Shown: positions 933 through 19,308 of the stretch, piece after piece
How positions within the stretch are numbered: the first letter of the stretch is position 1
Layout: every line of letters starts with the position of its first letter
Source: Entomortierella parvispora E1425
Taxonomy: Eukaryota; Fungi; Mortierellomycota
Direction: 5' to 3'
NCBI GenBank assembly: GCA_020891255.1
Contig: BQFW01000008.1
Location: forward strand, 3,224,001-3,288,000
Length of the DNA stretch: 64,000 nucleotides
The notes under the pieces: generated by a model
The model's database searches: none
Told to the model about the DNA's origin: nothing
What the model saw: the letters and a program-made list of their open reading frames with translations, nothing else
Program-made: the position numbers and the translations under genes

Positions 933-3536
933 ATGGAACAGACTCGGATGCTGCACGCCACAGATACCCCTGCTAGAACAAAGAGGATCGACTTTGACGG
1001 TATCAGCAGGCAAAGCCCTTCACCAAAGACAGGCTACGACTTCAGTGCTTTGGTACAAGGATTGACCGGACTAAAGTAAACATGCCCCTCATTCATAAAC
1101 ACGACCTCTGATACCCTAGATCATCCTTTTAACAACCTACTGCCTCCTGCCTTGAACAGACCGCCGACTTGTGACGGTGGACATGATGGAAACCCGATCT
1201 ATCAGTTCACTGTCGGTCGCCTGTATGAGTACGGTGATGGTATCCCTCAGAGCTACTCCAGAGCGATGAGCTGGTACCTGAAAGCAGCCCGCCAAGGCCT
1301 CGCCATTGCCCAAAACAGTGTCGGCGTCTTTTATCGTGACGGCAAGGATGGCAACCAGAATCCCTCTCTCGCCAAAGAGTGGTTCTCCAGGGCCGCTCAT
1401 CAGAACTTTGCTGACGCCCAGTACCACTTGGGCATGGCCTACTGCCTGGATGGCGATCGTTCAAGCGCCATGGAGTGGTTTATGAAAGCCGCCAATCAAG
1501 GACACTTGATGGCTCAGTGCGGTGTTGGTGCGATGTACTACAATGACGGTCATACTCCTGAGGATCTACCTAAAGCTATGGAATGGTATCTGAAGGCAGC
1601 CAACCAAGGACTCGCAACTGCTCAGTACAGCGTCGGCTCAATGTACGATACTGGTGACGGTGCCTCTCAGGACTATCATAAGGCAGCGGAGTGGTATTTG
1701 AAGGCGGCCACTCAAGGGAATGCCTTAGCACAGTACAACCTTGGCTTCCTGTACCAACATGGCCATGGCGTTCTGTTGGACATCTCTACAGCTGTGGAGT
1801 GGTATACAAAGGCAGCAGATCAAGGATTTGTCCAAGCTGAGTACTACGTAGGGCTCCTGCTTCATGTTGGCGATATTGTTCCGCAGGACAAACTCAGAGC
1901 CAAGGAATGGTATCTGAGGGCCGCTGAGCAAGGGGACGTCGACGCTCAGCTCGATCTGGCCACGATGTATGATTTTGGCGATGGGATCGCTCAGGATTAC
2001 CAGGAAGCAGCAAAGTGGTACTCGAGAGCGGCAGATCAAGGAGATCCTATGGCCCAGTATAGCCTCGGATTTTTGTACCAGCACGGCAAAGGAGTTCATC
2101 TCGACAATTCGAGGGCAATGGAATGGTACAGGAAGGCAGCAGATCAAGGGAATGACGATGCCAGATTCTGCCTTGGTGTCATGTACAATCAATTTGATCC
2201 TCCGGACTACTTCGAAGCAATGGAGTGCTACCTCATGGGGGCAATTCTGGGACACGCCGCCTCTCAAAACTGCACTGGTGCTCTGTATCACAATGGCCAT
2301 GGAGTCTCGAAAGATTTGGCCAAAGCAAGGGAATGGTTTCTCAAATCGGCCAACCAAGGATACACCTCCGCGCAGAAAAACATGGGCAATCTGTATTACC
2401 ACGGCAATGGCGTTACCCAGGATTACCAAAAAGCTTTCGAATGGTACCTGAAAGCTGCCGAGCAAGGACACGCGACGGCTCAGGGCGTCGTCGGTGAAAT
2501 GTACCAGTGTGGCGAAGGTGTTCCCAAGAATCTTCAAAGGGCCGTCGAGTGGTATATGAGAGCCGCCAAACAAGGCGATTCCTACGCCCAATGCCATTTG
2601 GGCGAAATGTGCCAGAGCGGCGATGGCGTTCCTCAGGACGATGAGAAAGCCATGGAATGGTTCGGCATGGCCACTGAGCGGAAGAAAGCTTCTACCCAGT
2701 ACCGCATCGGCGTTATGTACAAGGATGGAAAGGGTGTTCCCCAGAACTACCAGAAAGCAATGAGGTGGTTTTTGAAAGCCGCGTGGAAAGGACACTCGAC
2801 AGCCCAGTACAACGTCGGCTTTATGTACCAGAACGGCATGGGATGCACCGAGGACCACGAGGAGGCCATGGATTGGTATTTAAAGGCAGCTGGGCAAGGA
2901 AACGCCAACGCTCAATATACTGTCGGCCTTATGTATCAAAATGGCCGGATAGCTTCTGAAGATCAACAGAAAGCCATAATGTGGTTTAGGAAGGCTGCGG
3001 AGCAAGGACATGCTAAAGCCCAGTACAACGTCGGAATTACGCTCCAGAATGACAACAGCACTTTTGAGGACTACCAGGAAGCAATGGAATGGTTTAGGAA
3101 GGCTGCTGATCAAGGAGATGCAGCCGCTCAGAGAAGTATAGGCTTTATGTACCGGAATGGCCAAGGTGTGCCCGAGGACTATCGGCAAGCCATGGACTGG
3201 TTTTTGAAGGCGGCTGAGCAAGGAGATGCTACCGCCGAATGCAACATTGGATCTATGCACCAGCTTGGCCAAGGTGTCTCCACGGATTACCAGGAAGCCA
3301 TGGAATGGTTTTTGAAGGCCGCTGAACAAGGCAATGCCAGCGCTCAGTACAACATTGGATCCATATATCAGCATGGTCAGGGCGTTATCGAGGACTATCA
3401 AAAAGCTGTGGAGTGGTTCAAGCAAGCCGCTGCACAGGGCCACGCAGGCGCGCAGCGGAGGCTACAAAAAATGTCCCAGAAGAGCAACATAGGCGGTCGA
3501 CTGCAACTTGTTGCAGGGAGATGGATCCCGCCATAA
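933..3536 (+). CDS. Sel1-like repeat protein, about 21 SLRs, no signal peptide
   Basis: ORF 1152-3536 has 21 AxxW(Y/F)xKAAxQG repeats. A likely first exon 933-1075 (MEQTRML...) joins in frame through an 84-nt GT..AG intron at 1076-1159. Confidence 0.9.
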
Positions 3537-3864: not shown

Positions 3865-8681
<4,817 letters not shown>

Positions 8682-9848
8682 GAGGGGGTTGGAATGGAGG
8701 GGAGTGAGGAGAGGGGAGAGAAGAGAGGACAGGCGGGTGAATGTGCTAATCAGAGGAGGAGATGCGTGGATCAGAAGGTGGAATGCGTGCCAAAGATGGA
8801 AGGAGATCGCCGCCCTTTTATGTCGACTGCAACGGCGGGCTGGTGCCTTGTGCGCCTTCTTCCCACAAGTCGATATAACCTTGATCAGCCTGCGGCGTGC
8901 CTCAATGTACCGGGAAAGAAGAGTCAGCGCTGCGATGCAAGGGGAATGTATGCCGCAGCCTGTTTGTTTGTTGTCGACGCCCAGTCATCGCTATTCATGA
9001 CCCACTCATGCGAGCAATATGAATCATCCGCTTGCTCAGTCAGGGAAACTTGGTTCTTTCATTTTTCTTTCTTTCTTTATTCATCTTTTTCTGTTCTTTC
9101 TAGAGATCATATCGAACCTCTCGTAGACAAGTGGGCACATAGAGTGGTACTTCTTGTGATTAAAGGTCCTTTTACTCTTTGCCGTGAAAAAAAAATAGCC
9201 AGATATGGGGAAATCTGGTCATTAGAGTATCGGCATGATGTTCAAGGTGTGGAGACTGAAGGGGATCATTTGTTTGGAATTCATCACATCATCTGTCGAT
9301 CGAAGGGGAGGCCCAACGGTTTCTTTTTTTTGGCATTGAGTTTATTCAGACATTCCAAACACATACTCACTATACCTGCTCTTCATGATCGTGTCGATCT
9401 CAATGGACCTTCAAACATACCTGTTGGATGAGAGAGAAGAAAAAAAGTCAGCAATTGCATTTTTTCAACGTCTTTCAACTCCCAAATTCAGGAGGGAGGG
9501 TTGTGTCAAAGAGTCAGGAGCTAGTTTTAATCTGTAGATGCATAGAAAAGACAAGCGTCGGCAAGACCTCGACACGATCACCAAGGGCATCAGAACCACG
9601 AGCTACTACACAAACTTGAACAAGATCCGCAAACGCATCGAAGCAGATCTAGAGATCTCCTAGCACCTCTTGCTTTTTGACGGCAATTGACACTCACCAT
9701 GCTTGACGAGGAACTACTGTTCCCCCAGAGAGCACAGCCTCAACACAACGATTCAAGTTCCGCAAGTACAGCAGCTCACGATCCCAACACAGCAATCGAT
9801 TGAAGAATCGCTTCAACAAGTCTCCCACCCCCGCTTCACACCAGCCAA

Positions 9849-9947
9849 CGCCTCAGTCAAGAAAACCTCGAAAGAATTGCCAACTGATGATCCAAAGGAA
9901 TGTAGCGCCCTCATAGAATGGATTTAACTAGGTGTCATCATTTGGCG
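9849..9947 (-). ncRNA. SNR65: Box C/D snoRNA, snR65-like (25S Um2347)
   Basis: Terminal stem CGCC/GGCG, C box ATGATGA 9935-9941, D' ATGA 9911-9914, D box CTGA 9853-9856. The guide GTTAAATCCATTC pairs with 25S GAAUGGAUUAAC with one bulge. Confidence 0.78.
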
Positions 9948-10134
9948 ATCGACAACCCGTGAAGGTGATAATGAAGGAATGAAGGATGTCCTACCTTACG
10001 AAAAAACTCCTTGAAGGATGAGCGTGAAATTCCAACGGTAGGGATACAATATCAATCTAAAAGACCAAACATGAAAATGTTAGTCAATTGCTTCATCCGT
10101 TGTGGGAAATCTTTCAAGCGAAGAGCATTGAACG

Positions 10135-10216
10135 AAGGAGATCAGAGATCAAGGTTGTCTTCTCAATTGAGTCAGATGAAACACGGATGATCGAAATTTA
10201 GACATCATATTGCCTT
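10135..10216 (-). ncRNA. Box C/D snoRNA, predicted guide for 25S A646 (yeast numbering), SNORD126-like
   Basis: C box ATGATGT 10202-10208. Guide TCCGTGTTTCA(T) plus D' CTGA 10172-10175 pairs with 25S UGAAACACGGA. D box 10142-10145; lies within intron 10264-10057. Confidence 0.75.
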
Positions 10217-10423
10217 TGTTCGTGCGGGAAGGTAATGAAAAGAGCCAGGGAACCGTGCACATACCAATTATAACGTCCTTGTACGCTCCAAAGCTGAACA
10301 CCTGCAACAACCATGCCTTGGGACCAAGAACTAATACTGGAAAAGGAACGTTGACGTTAGTTTACATTCCAAAGCATTGACTCAGGCAACATGCTCCAAC
10401 AACATTGTAGTTGAAGACTGAAT

Positions 10424-10506
10424 AATCAGAATAAAAATTTGGTAAACAGAGTATCTTCCATGGTCTCAAGTCAGAAGCAGAACTGAAAATAGGTGTCATC
10501 ACTTAA
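10424..10506 (-). ncRNA. SNR61: Box C/D snoRNA, snR61/SNORD38-like copy 2 (identical to copy 1)
   Basis: Exact 83-bp repeat of 10720-10802, located in the next intron. Confidence 0.88.
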
Positions 10507-10719
10507 ACACTCGCCAACAACAATGAAGGAAAAGGGAGGTTCACTTAAGTACTTACGTTGAGAAGGATCTATCAATGTGCTGACAAACGTCAGTCCATCT
10601 TGCTACATGAAATGCAAATCTAGATCTGAGAAGCAAAAGAATAAAATGGATTAGAATCCAATCTCAATTGCGTCTTTCATAATGTCCAAAATCCAATGAT
10701 TGAAGCAGAGACGATCAAA

Positions 10720-10802
10720 AATCAGAATAAAAATTTGGTAAACAGAGTATCTTCCATGGTCTCAAGTCAGAAGCAGAACTGAAAATAGGTGTCATCACTT
10801 AA
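10720..10802 (-). ncRNA. SNR61: Box C/D snoRNA, snR61/SNORD38-like copy 1 (25S Am1133)
   Basis: C box GTGATGA 10792-10798. Guide CAGTTCTGCTT plus D' CTGA (10767-10770) pairs with 25S AAGCAGAACUG. D box 10722-10725; AA/TT terminal pair. Confidence 0.88.
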
Positions 10803-11010
10803 GATCGATGTGCTTCAATCAAAGGATAGGGGAATGCGTTGTTCACAAAGATGGTACTTACAGCTCAATGGATGACGATGACTCGACAGCGTGAATGGCA
10901 GTCAGATGTGAAGGAAATATCTATTAAAAAAAACCAGAACAGACAAATTAATGACGATCCTTTGCACTTGTTTTTTTTTTTTTGCAATATTTTTGAGGTG
11001 TATCGATGAA

Positions 11011-11083
11011 TCGTCAGATGGTAGTGCATGTTTCTTTTGCTCAGGTGCTCGCTGGAAACGGTTATGAAGTTATCCTCATTCGA
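11011..11083 (-). ncRNA. SNR55: Box C/D snoRNA, snR55/SNORD33-like (18S Um1269)
   Basis: C-like box ATGAGGA 11073-11079, D' CTGA, D box 11014-11017. The preceding CATGCACTACCAT matches the U33 guide as I recall it and pairs with 18S GUGGUGGUGCAUG. Confidence 0.85.
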
Positions 11084-11307
11084 ATCGGTACAGCTGGAAG
11101 GGTGAAGAAGCGATATCCATGTCCAATTGCATACCTTGAAAAGATTTTTCTGGATTCATGAATCGGAAGTTGACATCCTGAATGGAGAATCTCGAGATGA
11201 ATCTGTGCGAGCAAAAAATAAAAATAGACCCGGGTTAGAATATTTTCTTTTTCAACGCGTTCTCATACAAAGGACAACTCTCGCGCCATACAGGCTGGGT
11301 TGATGAA

Positions 11308-11396
11308 GAGGTCAGAAACGAGGAATTCCATTTGTTTACGAAAGATCCACATAGTATATTCAGGGTATCATTTTACGTACAACTTTTCATCAGGAG
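11308..11396 (-). ncRNA. SNR57: Box C/D snoRNA, snR57-like (18S Gm1572, yeast numbering)
   Basis: C box TGATGA 11387-11392, internal CTGA, D box CTGA 11312-11315. The preceding guide GGAATTCCTCGTT is complementary to 18S AACGAGGAAUUCC, and the +5 rule gives the G in AAC[G]AGG. Confidence 0.85.
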
Positions 11397-11560
11397 TGAA
11401 ATCAAAGCAAGCGAGTAGCTGCGAAGGGGGAAAGAACAAAAAAAGAAGGCAACTGAGAAGAAAACTTACCACCAAAGCACAAGGTCAACCTCGGGGGAGG
11501 AGGGAAGGGGAGGATGAAGAAGAGAGAAGAGAAGAGAGGAAACACACTCGCCGCAACGGT

Positions 11561-11617
11561 AAAAATTTTTATGTACGTTCGATCTGATTCCAAACAACAA
11601 AAGTTAAGGTCACGTGA
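11561..11617. promoter_or_regulatory. Promoter of snoRNA host: RRPE-like AAAAATTTTT plus E-box TCACGTGA
   Basis: AAAAATTTTT at 11561-11570 and TCACGTGA at 11610-11617 sit just upstream of the pyrimidine-rich first exon. RRPE is the yeast ribosome-biogenesis element. Confidence 0.45.
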
Positions 11618-12748
11618 TACATCGCATGATGTCGTGGAACATATCTAGATCGCACATATTGCAAAGCGCGTTTCGATCCCCTTTCGATGGCGACTTGTCC
11701 GTCAAGGATTGAGCAAAACGGAAGACCTTTGAGCATGACGCGATGAACAAGAAGGTTACATGCAATCTGTTCAACAGCACTAGTGCTATTTACCCCTGGT
11801 CCTGAAGCAGCTGCTGCATCAAACAATACAACAATAATGGATGGCGGGTGGCTGGCCTTGTGACAGAAAAAGGGGCAAGGCAACTCTGGGCACAGACAAT
11901 AATGTCAATAAAACACACGCACCGCAACGCACGCGCGATGTGGGTGAAAACGAAGGCGAGGTGAGTGATCTTGCCCTGAATATCGTGAACATGCCACCTT
12001 TTTCTTTTTTCTTTTTTCTTTTTTTTTTATAGGAGAGAGGGTCAGCAACCAAACCGCTCTCTTGCATCTCTCCCCCCTCTTGACTTACTGCCTTTTGCCC
12101 ATGCCAATGTCAAGGGCTCGACAGTGAATATAAAAAGAAGATCGATTGGGTGGAGACACAGGTTGCTCTGTTCAATGTGATGCCTGATGAGCACATGGGC
12201 ACCTGGCTGTCTTTGACGCCTTCCCTTTTTTTTTCTTTTTTTTTTTTGCACCCCCTTCTCTGGACACGAACACCCCCTCACCCCGCGCAGGAGCGAGACT
12301 GTCGGTTTTTCGGCTTGTCTGTGGGCACTTATTGTTGTGCAATCCGAGGAGCCTCTTTGACCCTCCTTCAGCAGAGGCGCAAGGTCAGCAAAAGGGAGGT
12401 CTGTCAGGTCATTCGTCCACAAAAATTGCCCCTTTCCTTGTCTTTGTTGACGCGGGTTGGGTGGAAAAAACTAGATCATGCCCCACCTGCTTGCCCCAGG
12501 TATAAAGGAGAGCCTGAATCGCCTGCGACAGCAGGGTTTACTTCCTTGTCTTCACCCCTCTGTCCTTCCACCTTCCCCCCTCCAAGCCGCTCCTCTCTCT
12601 CAACCACAACTAGACCTTTCCCGCGCAAAAAAAACAAGAGCCTTTCTCTCCTCGTACGCGCACGGCTGATCCACTTTTTCGTTCAACCCCAGTCAGATTT
12701 CTGATCTCCCCTCCATCAAAACCACTCTCCTTTTCAAAAGAAAAAACA

Positions 12749-19236: not shown

Positions 19237-19308
19237 CTCCTCGACCGGGAATTGAACCCGGGTCTTCCGCGTGACAGGCGGAGATACTCACCACTATACT
19301 ATCGGGGA
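19237..19308 (-). tRNA. tRNA-Asp(GTC)
   Basis: 72-nt cloverleaf TCCCCGA...GTC...TTCAATT...GGAG with perfect anticodon and T stems. An oligo-T terminator follows; the acceptor stem has a C4.A69 mismatch. Confidence 0.95.

Follow-up and report, generated by a model that had tools for sequence, protein, structure and literature searches.

A probable intronic host gene in Entomortierella parvispora carrying an enlarged fungal snoRNA cluster II

The vertebrate host genes UHG and GAS5 are defined by a TOP-type start site (C, then uninterrupted pyrimidines) and by sensitivity to NMD. UHG-like snoRNA hosts have been described in Neurospora crassa (Liu et al. 2009, PMC2780460). Fungal cluster II (snR57-snR55-snR61) is described as residing in the introns of a non-coding host gene in Euascomycetes and Basidiomycota and, for the Zygomycota, in Rhizopus oryzae, with juxtaposed introns resembling the YAG/GTRWGT junction discussed below (Luo et al. 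2013, PMC3596301). An initial annotation of the DNA analyzed here held that intronic snoRNA clusters are known in filamentous fungi.

The window, a 64,000-nucleotide stretch of the E. parvispora E1425 genome (contig BQFW01000008.1, positions 3,224,001 to 3,288,000), contains a locus that we read, with a probability of about 0.85, as a Pol II-transcribed non-protein-coding snoRNA host on the minus strand, running from ~11545 to ~9060 and forming a local cluster II enlarged to seven snoRNAs (Table 1). The gene type is a known one, that of the cluster II host described in PMC3596301. Transcription and splicing of the host, accumulation of the snoRNAs and the resulting rRNA modifications are what we infer from the sequence. 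Rfam matches, guide-target registers, conservation limited to the snoRNAs in four species and splice-signal geometry all support the earlier proposal of a dedicated non-coding host of the UHG/GAS5 type that holds a single box C/D snoRNA in each intron; this proposal also agrees with the published fungal hosts (PMC3596301; PMC2780460). The region was also correctly described as lacking a long ORF: the longest ATG-initiated frame spans 81 aa in the unspliced sequence (six frames) and, once the modeled introns are removed, 57 aa (37 aa in the Podila orthologue), and the first AUG of the spliced RNA opens an ORF of 6 codons.

Table 1. Predicted features of the host locus in window coordinates, ordered 5' to 3' along the minus strand.
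Feature	Positions	Strand	Remarks
Putative promoter	11546-11640	-	motifs compared with region upstream of Podila orthologue
GCGATGT	11625-11619	-	PAC-core-like; common to Podila
CACGTG	11616-11611	-	E-box; not in Podila
CATAAAAATTTTT	11573-11561	-	TATA-like, overlapping RRPE-like AAAWTTTT; both common to Podila
CCGTTG	11559	-	also upstream of Podila orthologue
Putative exon 1	11470-11545	-	82% pyrimidine; ends at conserved GTAAGT donor
Intron 1	11203-11469	-	GTAAGT ... CTAAC ... CAG; signals kept in position in orthologues
snoRNA 1, box C/D, snR57-type	11312-11393	-	C CUGAUGA, D' CUGA, D CUGA
Exon 2	11135-11202	-	68 nt; unalignable between genera
Intron 2	10921-11134	-	GTATGC ... TTAAT ... TAG
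snoRNA 2, box C/D, snR55/SNORD33-type	11008-11086	-	C box AUGAGGA
Exon 3	10862-10920	-	59 nt
Intron 3	10626-10861	-	GTAAGT ... CTAAT ... CAG
snoRNA 3, box C/D, snR61 copy A	10719-10803	-	Rfam RF00476, 58.7 bits (gathering 45)
Exon 4	10557-10625	-	69 nt
Intron 4	10337-10556	-	GTAAGT ... CTAAC ... CAG
snoRNA 4, box C/D, snR61 copy B	10423-10507	-	Rfam RF00476, 59.0 bits (gathering 45)
Exon 5	10265-10336	-	72 nt
Intron 5	10057-10264	-	GTATGT ... CTAAC ... TAG
snoRNA 5, box C/D	10141-10214	-	C box AUGAUGU; guide unchanged in four species
Exon 6	10000-10056	-	57 nt
Intron 6, preferred model	9532-9999	-	donor GTAAGG at 9999, acceptor UCUACAG at 9532
snoRNA 6, box C/D orphan	9844-9946	-	C AUGAUGA, D CUGA; terminal stem GCCAA/UUGGC
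Rod-like hairpin in intron 6	9558-9798	-	~240 nt; from folding and conservation
Rod tip hairpin	9735-9698	-	invariant; capped by AGUA (AGNN tetraloop)
Putative exon 7	9421-9531	-	111 nt (102-111 nt in orthologues); starts with invariant AUUAAAACUAGCUCCUGA
Conserved donor	9415-9420	-	GTATGT (GTAAGT or GTGAGT in orthologues)
Box H/ACA snoRNA candidate, snR80-type	9106-9235	-	two hairpins; missed in the initial annotation
AATAAA, possible host poly(A) signal	9076-9081	-	30-50 nt past ACA box in 4/4 species

Three orthologous loci were compared: L004 is from Podila horticola, L126 from a soil metagenome and L128 from a more distantly related Mortierellaceae contig. All three carry the snoRNAs in the same order and on the same strand and share the PH-domain and ABCC genes as neighbors, and the gene calls of the orthologous public contigs include neither the seven snoRNAs nor the host. 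The order of snR57-, snR55- and snR61-type snoRNAs on one strand was found here and also in L004 and L126. Conservation across the orthologous loci was confined to the snoRNAs: all six box C/D members are conserved box-to-box in the three other loci while their flanks are not, and between the two Podila-like loci identity was 97.4% for snoRNAs, 72.5% for exons and 72.3% for intron flanks, so that exons drift like the flanks.

Six C/D modules, one per intron, had been proposed, and a C box and a D box were found in every one, with one C box reading AUGAGGA and one AUGAUGU against the RUGAUGA consensus; two score above the snR61 gathering threshold of Rfam and one slightly below that of SNORD33. 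Guide targets were assessed on yeast rRNA (numbering verified) in place of the species' own. The claim that the guides pair with conserved rRNA stood for five of the six, which are placed at the methylation register, and fell short for snoRNA 6, with only a weak match. The D guide of snoRNA 1 forms 13 Watson-Crick base pairs with 18S, placing G1572 at the fifth position (shuffles 0.007), where yeast snR57 guides Gm1572 (PMC8307265); its identity to the Podila and metagenome orthologues is 93%. Likewise, the D guide of snoRNA 2 pairs with 18S with U1269 at the fifth position (shuffles 0.007), and this snoRNA reached 40.1 bits (E = 5e-5) against Rfam SNORD33 (RF00133), below the gathering score of 44, with 40.4 bits in L004 and L126. 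The two snR61 copies are 100% identical from C box to D box with only 27-35% identity in their flanks, a duplication homogenized by gene conversion; their orthologues in L004 and L126 score 53-58 bits. In snoRNA 3, the D' guide targets 25S-A1133 and a second conserved region, UACCAAA, offers an accessory pairing with 25S 1123-1135 (0/300 shuffles), snR61 having been counted among snoRNAs with extra base-pairing (PMC3116282). An external stem of 17 nt encloses this snoRNA (inverted repeat 10827-10811 with 10707-10691), and terminal or external stems were seen in snoRNAs 2, 3, 4 and 6.

The D' guide of snoRNA 5, UCCGUGUUUCA, pairs with 25S 643-653 through 11 Watson-Crick base pairs, which puts A646 at the fifth position; no target of its D guide was found in yeast rRNA, and its resemblance to Rfam SNORD18 is weak (16 bits, gathering 41). 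Predicted 2'-O-methylation sites are thus 18S-G1572, 18S-U1269, 25S-A1133 (two gene copies) and 25S-A646. Rfam recognized neither snoRNAs 1, 5 and 6 nor the H/ACA element, and its covariance search of the locus returned no match at E <= 10 for the snR57, snR80 and SNORD126 families; the use of these names here rests on target, synteny and architecture, without demonstrated sequence homology. Taken bare, rRNA complementarity of at least 11 nt occurs at chance level on both strands, as would be expected if the whole pattern were a functionless arrangement of motifs in an AT-rich intergenic spacer. The probability of such an arrangement is nevertheless negligible given the Rfam matches above gathering score, the box-to-box conservation in four species, the guide registers on known sites and the covariation of the H/ACA element, and we regard it as refuted by the comparative data.

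The initial annotation gave seven GT...AG pairs and exons of 19-72 nt (68, 59, 69, 72, 57 and 19 nt after exon 1), all of which exist at those positions. It had given no strand; all features lie on the minus strand. A donor hexamer was present 35-85 nt upstream in 22/22 snoRNA instances from the four species (chance 0.11 per such interval; 0/22 on the opposite strand), and a branch point followed by YAG was present downstream in 18/18 (chance 0.375; 8/22 on the opposite strand). The snoRNAs lie 43-79 nt from the donor and 49-94 nt from the branch point. As sequence motifs, donor, branch point and acceptor are conserved in position around the snoRNAs in all four species, and the ~200 nt spacers between snoRNAs give a uniform exon/intron periodicity. 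This arrangement of splice signals and snoRNAs is far beyond chance.

At the 5' end, an RRPE-like and E-box promoter had been suggested; the RRPE-like AAAWTTTT is common to the Podila orthologue, but the CACGTG E-box is absent there. The pyrimidine tract of exon 1 is indeed present (68-78% pyrimidine in the corresponding region of Podila and the metagenome locus), yet it is not peculiar to this gene: the leader of the neighboring ABCC gene is similarly CT-rich, and a TOP-like reading is therefore unsupported. The promoter region also bears on the idea that the snoRNAs are separate genes, each running from a promoter to a terminator of its own, which merely happen to be genomic neighbors. Independent genes of this sort are frequent in budding yeast (PMC5934358), but here a single conserved promoter-like region was found, at the 5' end of the host, and no TATA-like or other conserved element precedes the individual snoRNAs, whose flanks are unconserved except for the splice motifs. 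With spacers so short and regular, independent genes appear very improbable.

At the 3' end, the gene end placed at 9330 by the initial annotation was not borne out, since the donor at 9420 is conserved and an H/ACA snoRNA lies further on, at 9235-9106. The four helices of this candidate comprise 30 pairs, with 94.9% of cells paired and 8 compensatory pairs (0/500 shuffles; slid controls 35-53%), and G.U pairs in all four species put the element on the minus strand. An H box, AGAGUA (AGAGYA across species), follows hairpin 1 by one nucleotide, and the tail box is AUA at 9113-9111, as in three of the four species, with ACA in L128. The pockets, at 15 and 14 nt from their boxes and so within the 14-16 nt typical of the class, pair with yeast 18S 751-767 (7+8 bp) and 25S 772-785 (4+8 bp or more), and yeast snR80 targets 18S U759 and 25S U776 (PMC8307265, PMC5699541). 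By the strict rule, the hairpin-1 pocket predicts 18S U758, off by one from the known yeast U759; this pocket has diverged in L128, and the hairpin-2 guide of the window carries a mismatch (shuffles 0.38). The element is predicted to guide pseudouridylation of 18S-U759 and 25S-U776.

The same end of the gene raises the question of whether the snoRNA introns sit in an extended 5' UTR of the ABCC transporter gene, which would make the host protein-coding. In the window, L126 and L128, the ABCC gene does follow directly in the same orientation, and an acceptor for the 9420 donor was not found. Against this stand the TATA-like box (~8825) and CT-rich leader that the ABCC gene has of its own before its ATG at 8681, the AATAAA following the H/ACA snoRNA in all species, and a spacer of ~340 to 730 nt that is unconserved; we consider a shared transcript highly unlikely and retain the separate non-coding host.

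Within the host, the 3' third offers three candidate acceptors (9717, 9532 and 9421). The initial annotation split this region into introns 9999-9717 and 9697-9532 around a 19-nt exon. The GT...AG pairs of that seventh intron exist, but the exon is doubtful because it falls at the apex of a long conserved rod hairpin and may not be a splice product; a single intron, 9999-9532, is the model we prefer on the grounds of the rod structure. The context of the 9532 acceptor is invariant in the four species (AAG in one). Past the rod tip lie GUGAGU (9697) and a small covarying hairpin (9664-9645). MFE z-scores of the rod were -2.26 (window), -1.90 (L128) and -3.12 (Podila); its arms pair within each species and are unalignable between genera, its identity between the two Podila-like loci is 87-93% vs ~72% for neutral flanks, and in L128 the tip stem stays paired on the host strand through a G.U pair. 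At its 3' end, putative exon 7 has a branch-point/pyrimidine/YAG motif directly adjoining the next donor, and this YAG/GTRWGT junction is conserved in four species; no clear partner acceptor was seen for the donor at 9420. In intron 6, snoRNA 6 has two conserved guide regions and an external stem extending to about 9965 and 9818. Yeast rRNA and ~120 further eukaryotic rDNA contigs yielded no convincing target for it; its best rRNA match is 15 bp with one mismatch and two G.U pairs (shuffles 0.03-0.04).

AGNN stem-loops are the recognition signal of Rnt1p, the yeast RNase III, in snoRNA precursors (PMC5934358). It is a speculative and rather unlikely proposal that the AGNN-capped rod serves as an RNase III entry site, and, relatedly, that orphan snoRNA 6 and the rod serve a non-rRNA or lineage-specific target. 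If true, AGNN-directed RNase III processing of snoRNA precursors, hitherto characterized in budding yeasts, would have been present already in early-diverging fungi and would operate beside splicing-dependent release. The conserved rod, with a tip capped like the Rnt1p recognition signal (PMC5934358), also favors a broader scheme, in which real snoRNAs are released from an unspliced polycistronic precursor by an Rnt1-type RNase III and exonucleases and the splice-like motifs go unused; the snR57-snR55-snR61 unit of Saccharomyces cerevisiae is unspliced in this way (PMC3596301). Against that scheme stand the splice motifs around every snoRNA, at fixed distances in four species with otherwise unalignable flanks and absent on the opposite strand. 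Furthermore, there is a single AGNN hairpin rather than one between each snoRNA pair, and Rhizopus and other non-Saccharomycetaceae fungi show the intronic form (PMC3596301). An unspliced precursor is thus improbable, and the spliced host remains our reading.

In the mechanism we propose, the primary host transcript would be spliced, each excised intron carrying a single box C/D snoRNA whose spacing to donor and branch point is fixed. The introns would then be debranched and trimmed by exonucleases to the snoRNP-protected core, external stems from the intron flanks helping to join the C and D boxes, and the spliced RNA, made of short exons without constrained sequence, would be a by-product.

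The main value of the locus is in annotation: seven snoRNAs and their host, and six predicted rRNA modification sites for Mortierellaceae. It extends the documented cluster II to another early-diverging fungal lineage and illustrates how hosts of this kind expand: an intron was duplicated in tandem together with its snoRNA, with gene conversion, a guide to 25S-A646 was recruited that humans have and budding yeast does not, and an H/ACA member was added within an otherwise C/D host. Yeast snR80 is not known to be a member of the snR57-snR55-snR61 cluster. The orphan snoRNA 6 and the AGNN-tipped rod pose modest questions, and nothing here would surprise a snoRNA specialist.

Among known guides, U18/SNORD18 (yeast 25S-A649/C650) shares the core UCCGUGUUUC with the snoRNA 5 guide, whose methylation site lies three nucleotides 5' of the U18 site. 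A646 is the position served by human SNORD126, which guides 28S-Am1310/1323 (PMC9941101), while snoRNA 5 has no significant match to the SNORD126 or SNORD18 Rfam families; budding yeast lacks Nm at 25S A646, with m1A645 adjacent (PMC8307265). The H/ACA candidate resembles yeast snR80 in its two hairpins, H box, ACA box and 14-15 nt pocket-to-box spacing, its two pockets matching both rRNA sites served by one yeast snoRNA (PMC8307265), and differs in the lack of sequence homology via Rfam, AUA for ACA in 3/4 species and the U758 register. Like Rnt1p signals, the rod tip is an AGNN-capped stem (AGUA or AGUC) in a snoRNA precursor, adjoining a box C/D snoRNA; unlike them, it belongs to an early-diverging fungus and lies within a putative intron, atop a far longer rod, and is invariant rather than covarying.

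Compared with known hosts, the locus shares with the Neurospora UHG-like clusters a non-coding host with short ORFs only and one box C/D snoRNA per (here predicted) intron (PMC2780460), and with these and vertebrate UHG/GAS5 a similar snoRNA-to-acceptor spacing, whereas its pyrimidine tract, found also in the ABCC leader, is not the specific TOP signature of the vertebrate genes. Cluster II (Luo et al. 2013, PMC3596301) is the closest counterpart. Its three snoRNAs recur here on one strand with their 5'-to-3' order unchanged and a separate (here predicted) intron for each, and common to both are short, poorly conserved exons, no long ORF and juxtaposed acceptor/donor sites, there described as exon loss with stepwise splicing. 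Relative to the snR57-snR55-snR61 unit described there, the Entomortierella locus carries seven snoRNAs, with snR61 duplicated in tandem introns, two more C/D snoRNAs (the 25S-A646 guide and the orphan) after snR61, an H/ACA snoRNA at the 3' end and one intron with a ~240-nt rod hairpin.

Orthologous loci were sought through contigs encoding orthologues of the flanking genes, together with one metagenome scan using an invariant guide; among named relatives of the PH-domain gene to the right of the candidate host gene, the best are in Podila horticola and Modicella, which places the window in Mortierellaceae. Three loci were recovered: L004 (Podila horticola), L126 (a soil-metagenome contig, 84% identical to L004) and L128 (a more diverged Mortierellaceae contig). 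Most Logan contigs reached through flanking proteins in the search for further orthologues end <1 kb from the locus. In all three loci the snoRNA set, its order and its strand are unchanged when referred to the PH-domain gene, the ABCC transporter gene or both. When the window was compared with each locus using BLAST, discrete islands alone aligned, and six of these are the predicted box C/D snoRNAs from box to box (numbered 5' to 3' along the host; see the table), for which RNAs of ∼66–103 nt are expected. The pattern is repeated in DNA contigs of a closer relative, and the four read runs placed on the locus are DNA of a diverged relative, usable as a conservation footprint only. Between the two Podila-like loci that can be aligned end to end, identity is 97.4% in snoRNAs, 72.5% in exons and 72.3% in intron flanks; the exons are therefore without detectable constraint.

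The splice signals recur around every snoRNA. A GTAAGT, GTATGT or near variant sits 43–79 nt before each C box, and a CTAAC-type branch motif follows each D box by 49–94 nt, with a YAG 19–38 nt beyond. Across the four species, a donor hexamer lies in the expected window for all 22 snoRNA instances (chance 0.11; 0/22 on the opposite strand), as does the branch point to YAG arrangement in 18/18 (chance 0.375). Predicted introns measure ∼190–280 nt and internal exons ∼54–72 nt across these species, with unalignable exon sequences. Predicted introns 1–5 span 11469–11203, 11134–10921, 10861–10626, 10556–10337 and 10264–10057. The seven GT-AG introns and 19–72 nt exons proposed in the initial annotation can all be located in the sequence at the positions it implied, and its view that the region lacks a long ORF held: the predicted spliced RNA (540–690 nt) has a longest ATG ORF of 57 aa (37 aa in Podila), and its first AUG starts a 6-codon ORF.

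Positions of features in the window and predicted guide targets on yeast rRNA
Feature	Position	Strand	Remarks
Candidate host gene	∼11545 to ∼9060	minus	
snoRNA 1		minus	D guide on 18S-G1572, 13 Watson-Crick bp (snR57 site)
snoRNA 1 D' guide region	11383-11361	minus	
snoRNA 2	11086-11008	minus	D guide on 18S-U1269 (snR55 site)
snoRNA 2 D' guide region	11070-11049	minus	
snoRNA 3 (snR61 copy A)	10803-10719	minus	D' guide on 25S-A1133 (snR61 site)
snoRNA 4 (snR61 copy B)	10507-10423	minus	D' guide on 25S-A1133 (snR61 site)
snoRNA 5		minus	D' guide on 25S-A646, 11 Watson-Crick bp (human SNORD126 site)
Intron 6, preferred model	9999-9532	minus	
snoRNA 6	9946-9844	minus	
Rod-like hairpin	9798-9558	minus	∼240 nt
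Hairpin at rod tip	9735-9698	minus	
Acceptor-donor junction	9421/9420	minus	
Inverted repeat, 21 nt	9377-9397 with 9569-9589		86% complementary
Candidate H/ACA island	9235-9106	minus	
TATA-like box of ABCC gene	near 8825	minus	
ABCC transporter gene	8681 to ∼4368	minus	
tRNA gene	19237-19308	minus	Rfam, 59.1 bits

At gathering thresholds Rfam returned two snR61-type box C/D snoRNAs (snoRNAs 3 and 4), and a permissive scan added a SNORD33/snR55-type RNA at the position of snoRNA 2 (40.1 bits vs a gathering score of 44). Targets were assigned on S. cerevisiae-type rDNA from contig L012, with numbering validated on the identities of known modified nucleotides. This contig (NZ_QXFN01000006.1) is labelled Cellulomonas telluris and carries a complete S. 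cerevisiae-type rDNA unit (18S 1800 nt, 25S 3396 nt); a eukaryotic 5.8S ITS3 primer site was found in >100 contigs of the prokaryotic genome collection (many of L006–L125), which look like eukaryotic contamination of bacterial assemblies and MAGs. Unanchored antisense matches of at least 11 nt to rRNA were at chance level (minus strand 18, plus strand 12, shuffles ∼11), and therefore only box-anchored registers were counted. On this basis, the earlier proposal that all six snoRNAs carry rRNA guides stands for snoRNAs 1–5 on yeast rRNA and is not confirmed for snoRNA 6, which gave no convincing target in yeast rRNA or ∼120 other eukaryotic rDNAs.

SnoRNAs 3 and 4 have a second conserved region, whose pairing with 25S 1123–1135 (0/300 shuffles) corresponds to the accessory pairing of snR61 described by van Nues et al. 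(PMC3116282). In the window these two snR61 copies do not differ at any position between C box and D box (100% identity), their flanks being 27–35% identical, and within each of three lineages they are closer to each other than to their positional counterparts elsewhere. This is consistent with a unit of intron plus snoRNA having been duplicated in tandem long ago, with later gene conversion that would have been limited to the snoRNA.

The predicted snoRNA 5 target, A646, is unmethylated in yeast and lies three nt 5' of the U18 site, at the equivalent of human 28S-Am1310/1323, which is guided by SNORD126 (PMC9941101); compared with U18, the snoRNA 5 guide has three additional nt before the D' box. 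The yeast modification list places m1A645 (Rrp8/Bmt1, conserved) and Am649/Cm650 (U18) on either side (PMC8307265), so that the predicted Am646 would, if all occur in this fungus, form part of an unusually dense modification patch. Higher-scoring matches of the snoRNA 5 D guide fell on the antisense strand of the LSU gene and hence are not targets.

The D' guide regions of yeast snR57 and snR55 have been rated 'inactive' (PMC3116282). Their counterparts in snoRNAs 1 and 2 are fully conserved and pair with yeast 25S ∼20 nt apart (3254–3288): 14 bp including 3 G.U around U3277 for snoRNA 1 (0/300 shuffles) and 11 bp around U3258 for snoRNA 2 (shuffles 0.057). Each may have a second, lineage-specific target in the 3' domain of 25S. 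Local accessory pairing was not significant for these two D' guides or for the snoRNA 5 D guide. The orphan guides had no exact complement among ∼120 eukaryotic rDNA contigs, and scans of viral contigs with them gave chance matches only, without rRNA landmarks.

SnoRNA 6, for now an orphan, shows canonical boxes and strong conservation of both guide regions, and it has a long external stem in addition to a terminal one. Conservation extends beyond it, the sequence immediately after its D box being the 3' arm of this external stem. A coding explanation of the 9443–9946 block was rejected, as substitutions show no third-position bias and indels are 1–2 nt. A single ∼440-nt C/D RNA running from snoRNA 6 to a CUGA at 9517 was also rejected: in all four species snoRNA 6 carries a D box of its own together with terminal and external stems, and the flanking complementarity noted for such an RNA is missing in L128. 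A long-range GGAGCUG/UAGCUCC pairing predicted from three species is likewise missing in L128, and an H/ACA 'ACA' box at 9535 was discarded (AAA in L126; no hairpin/H-box geometry fits).

Downstream of snoRNA 6, each species has one rod-like hairpin (z-scores −2.3, −1.9 and −3.1) with arms that are complementary within species and unalignable between genera. At its tip sits an invariant hairpin with an AGUA or AGUC loop, then GUGAGU and a small covarying hairpin. The 19-nt exon of the initial annotation is the 3' half of this tip hairpin, and its acceptor AG, at 9717, is the tetraloop AG. With the rod looped out, ∼68 nt would separate the D box of snoRNA 6 from the UCUAU before the invariant acceptor 9532, as in the other introns. 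Both observations favour one long intron 6 over two introns separated by a 19-nt exon, and it is this model, inferred from spacing and folding, that we prefer. AGNN tetraloops are the Rnt1p recognition signal in yeast snoRNA precursors (PMC5934358), an analogy that suggests the capped rod tip may have a processing role.

The segment beyond intron 6 (102–111 nt) opens with an invariant 18-mer and closes, in four species, with a branch-point/pyrimidine/YAG array abutting a strong donor. This is a juxtaposed-intron junction, a type classed by Luo et al. as exon loss with stepwise splicing (PMC3596301). An inverted repeat joins a stretch just past this donor to the 3' arm of the rod. No acceptor partner was found for the conserved donor at 9420; the CTAAT...CCAG at 9225–9215 was rejected as last acceptor, being part of hairpin 1 of the island described below and lacking an AG in L128.

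This island, outside the region originally annotated and expected to yield an RNA of ∼130 nt, folds as hairpin-hinge-hairpin-tail (30 pairs, 94.9% of cells paired, 8 compensatory pairs; 0/500 shuffles; slid controls 35–53%), and conserved G.U pairs put it on the transcribed strand. A coding explanation was dismissed, the frame being lost between species. An H box (AGAGYA, of ANANNA type) lies one nt past hairpin 1; pocket 1 is 15 nt from the H box and the top of pocket 2 is 14 nt from A(C/U)A. Pocket 1 matches yeast 18S GAAAAAA-UU-AGAGUGUU at U758/759 (7+8 bp, shuffles 0.003), one nt out of register by the strict rule; in L128 the first pocket has diverged. Pocket 2 matches yeast 25S around U776 (4+8 to 4+11 bp; shuffles 0.027–0.067 in L128 and Podila), more weakly in the window, where the guide has one change. 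Both sites are those of yeast snR80 (PMC8307265, PMC5699541), and a chance match of both pockets in a single RNA to the two targets of one yeast snoRNA is unlikely. The island went undetected in the Rfam search; its fold and pockets make it a candidate snR80-type H/ACA RNA and putative seventh snoRNA of the host.

An AATAAA follows the ACA box by 30–50 nt in all four species. Directly downstream on the same strand, and at a syntenic position in L126 and L128, lies a full-size gene for an ABCC-type ABC transporter. This gene has a TATA-like box, a CT-rich leader and an ATG of its own; the host is therefore a separate unit. Upstream of the host, the window and Podila have several elements in common: an RRPE-like AAAWTTTT motif, a TATA-like box with CCGTTG after it and, upstream, a PAC-core-like GCGATGT. 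Of the RRPE-like and E-box promoter originally described, the AAAWTTTT is thus shared, and the CACGTG E-box is not in Podila; co-regulation with ribosome biogenesis is plausible but unproven. The pyrimidine-rich first exon was borne out (68–82% in three species), and a similar leader in the ABCC gene means that this is not peculiar to the host; a TOP-like role has no specific support.

The snR57-snR55-snR61 unit of the host corresponds to the fungal 'cluster II', which in Euascomycetes, Basidiomycota and Rhizopus has been described as lying in the introns of a non-coding host of poor conservation (PMC3596301). In Neurospora, UHG-like hosts that carry a single snoRNA in each intron are established (PMC2780460). 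We consider it well supported that this locus is an additional case of this known kind of fungal snoRNA host, for which transcription, splicing, NMD and modifications are predicted only. Its local particulars are the duplicated snR61, the 25S-A646 guide, the orphan C/D RNA, the candidate snR80-type H/ACA RNA and the AGNN-tipped rod.
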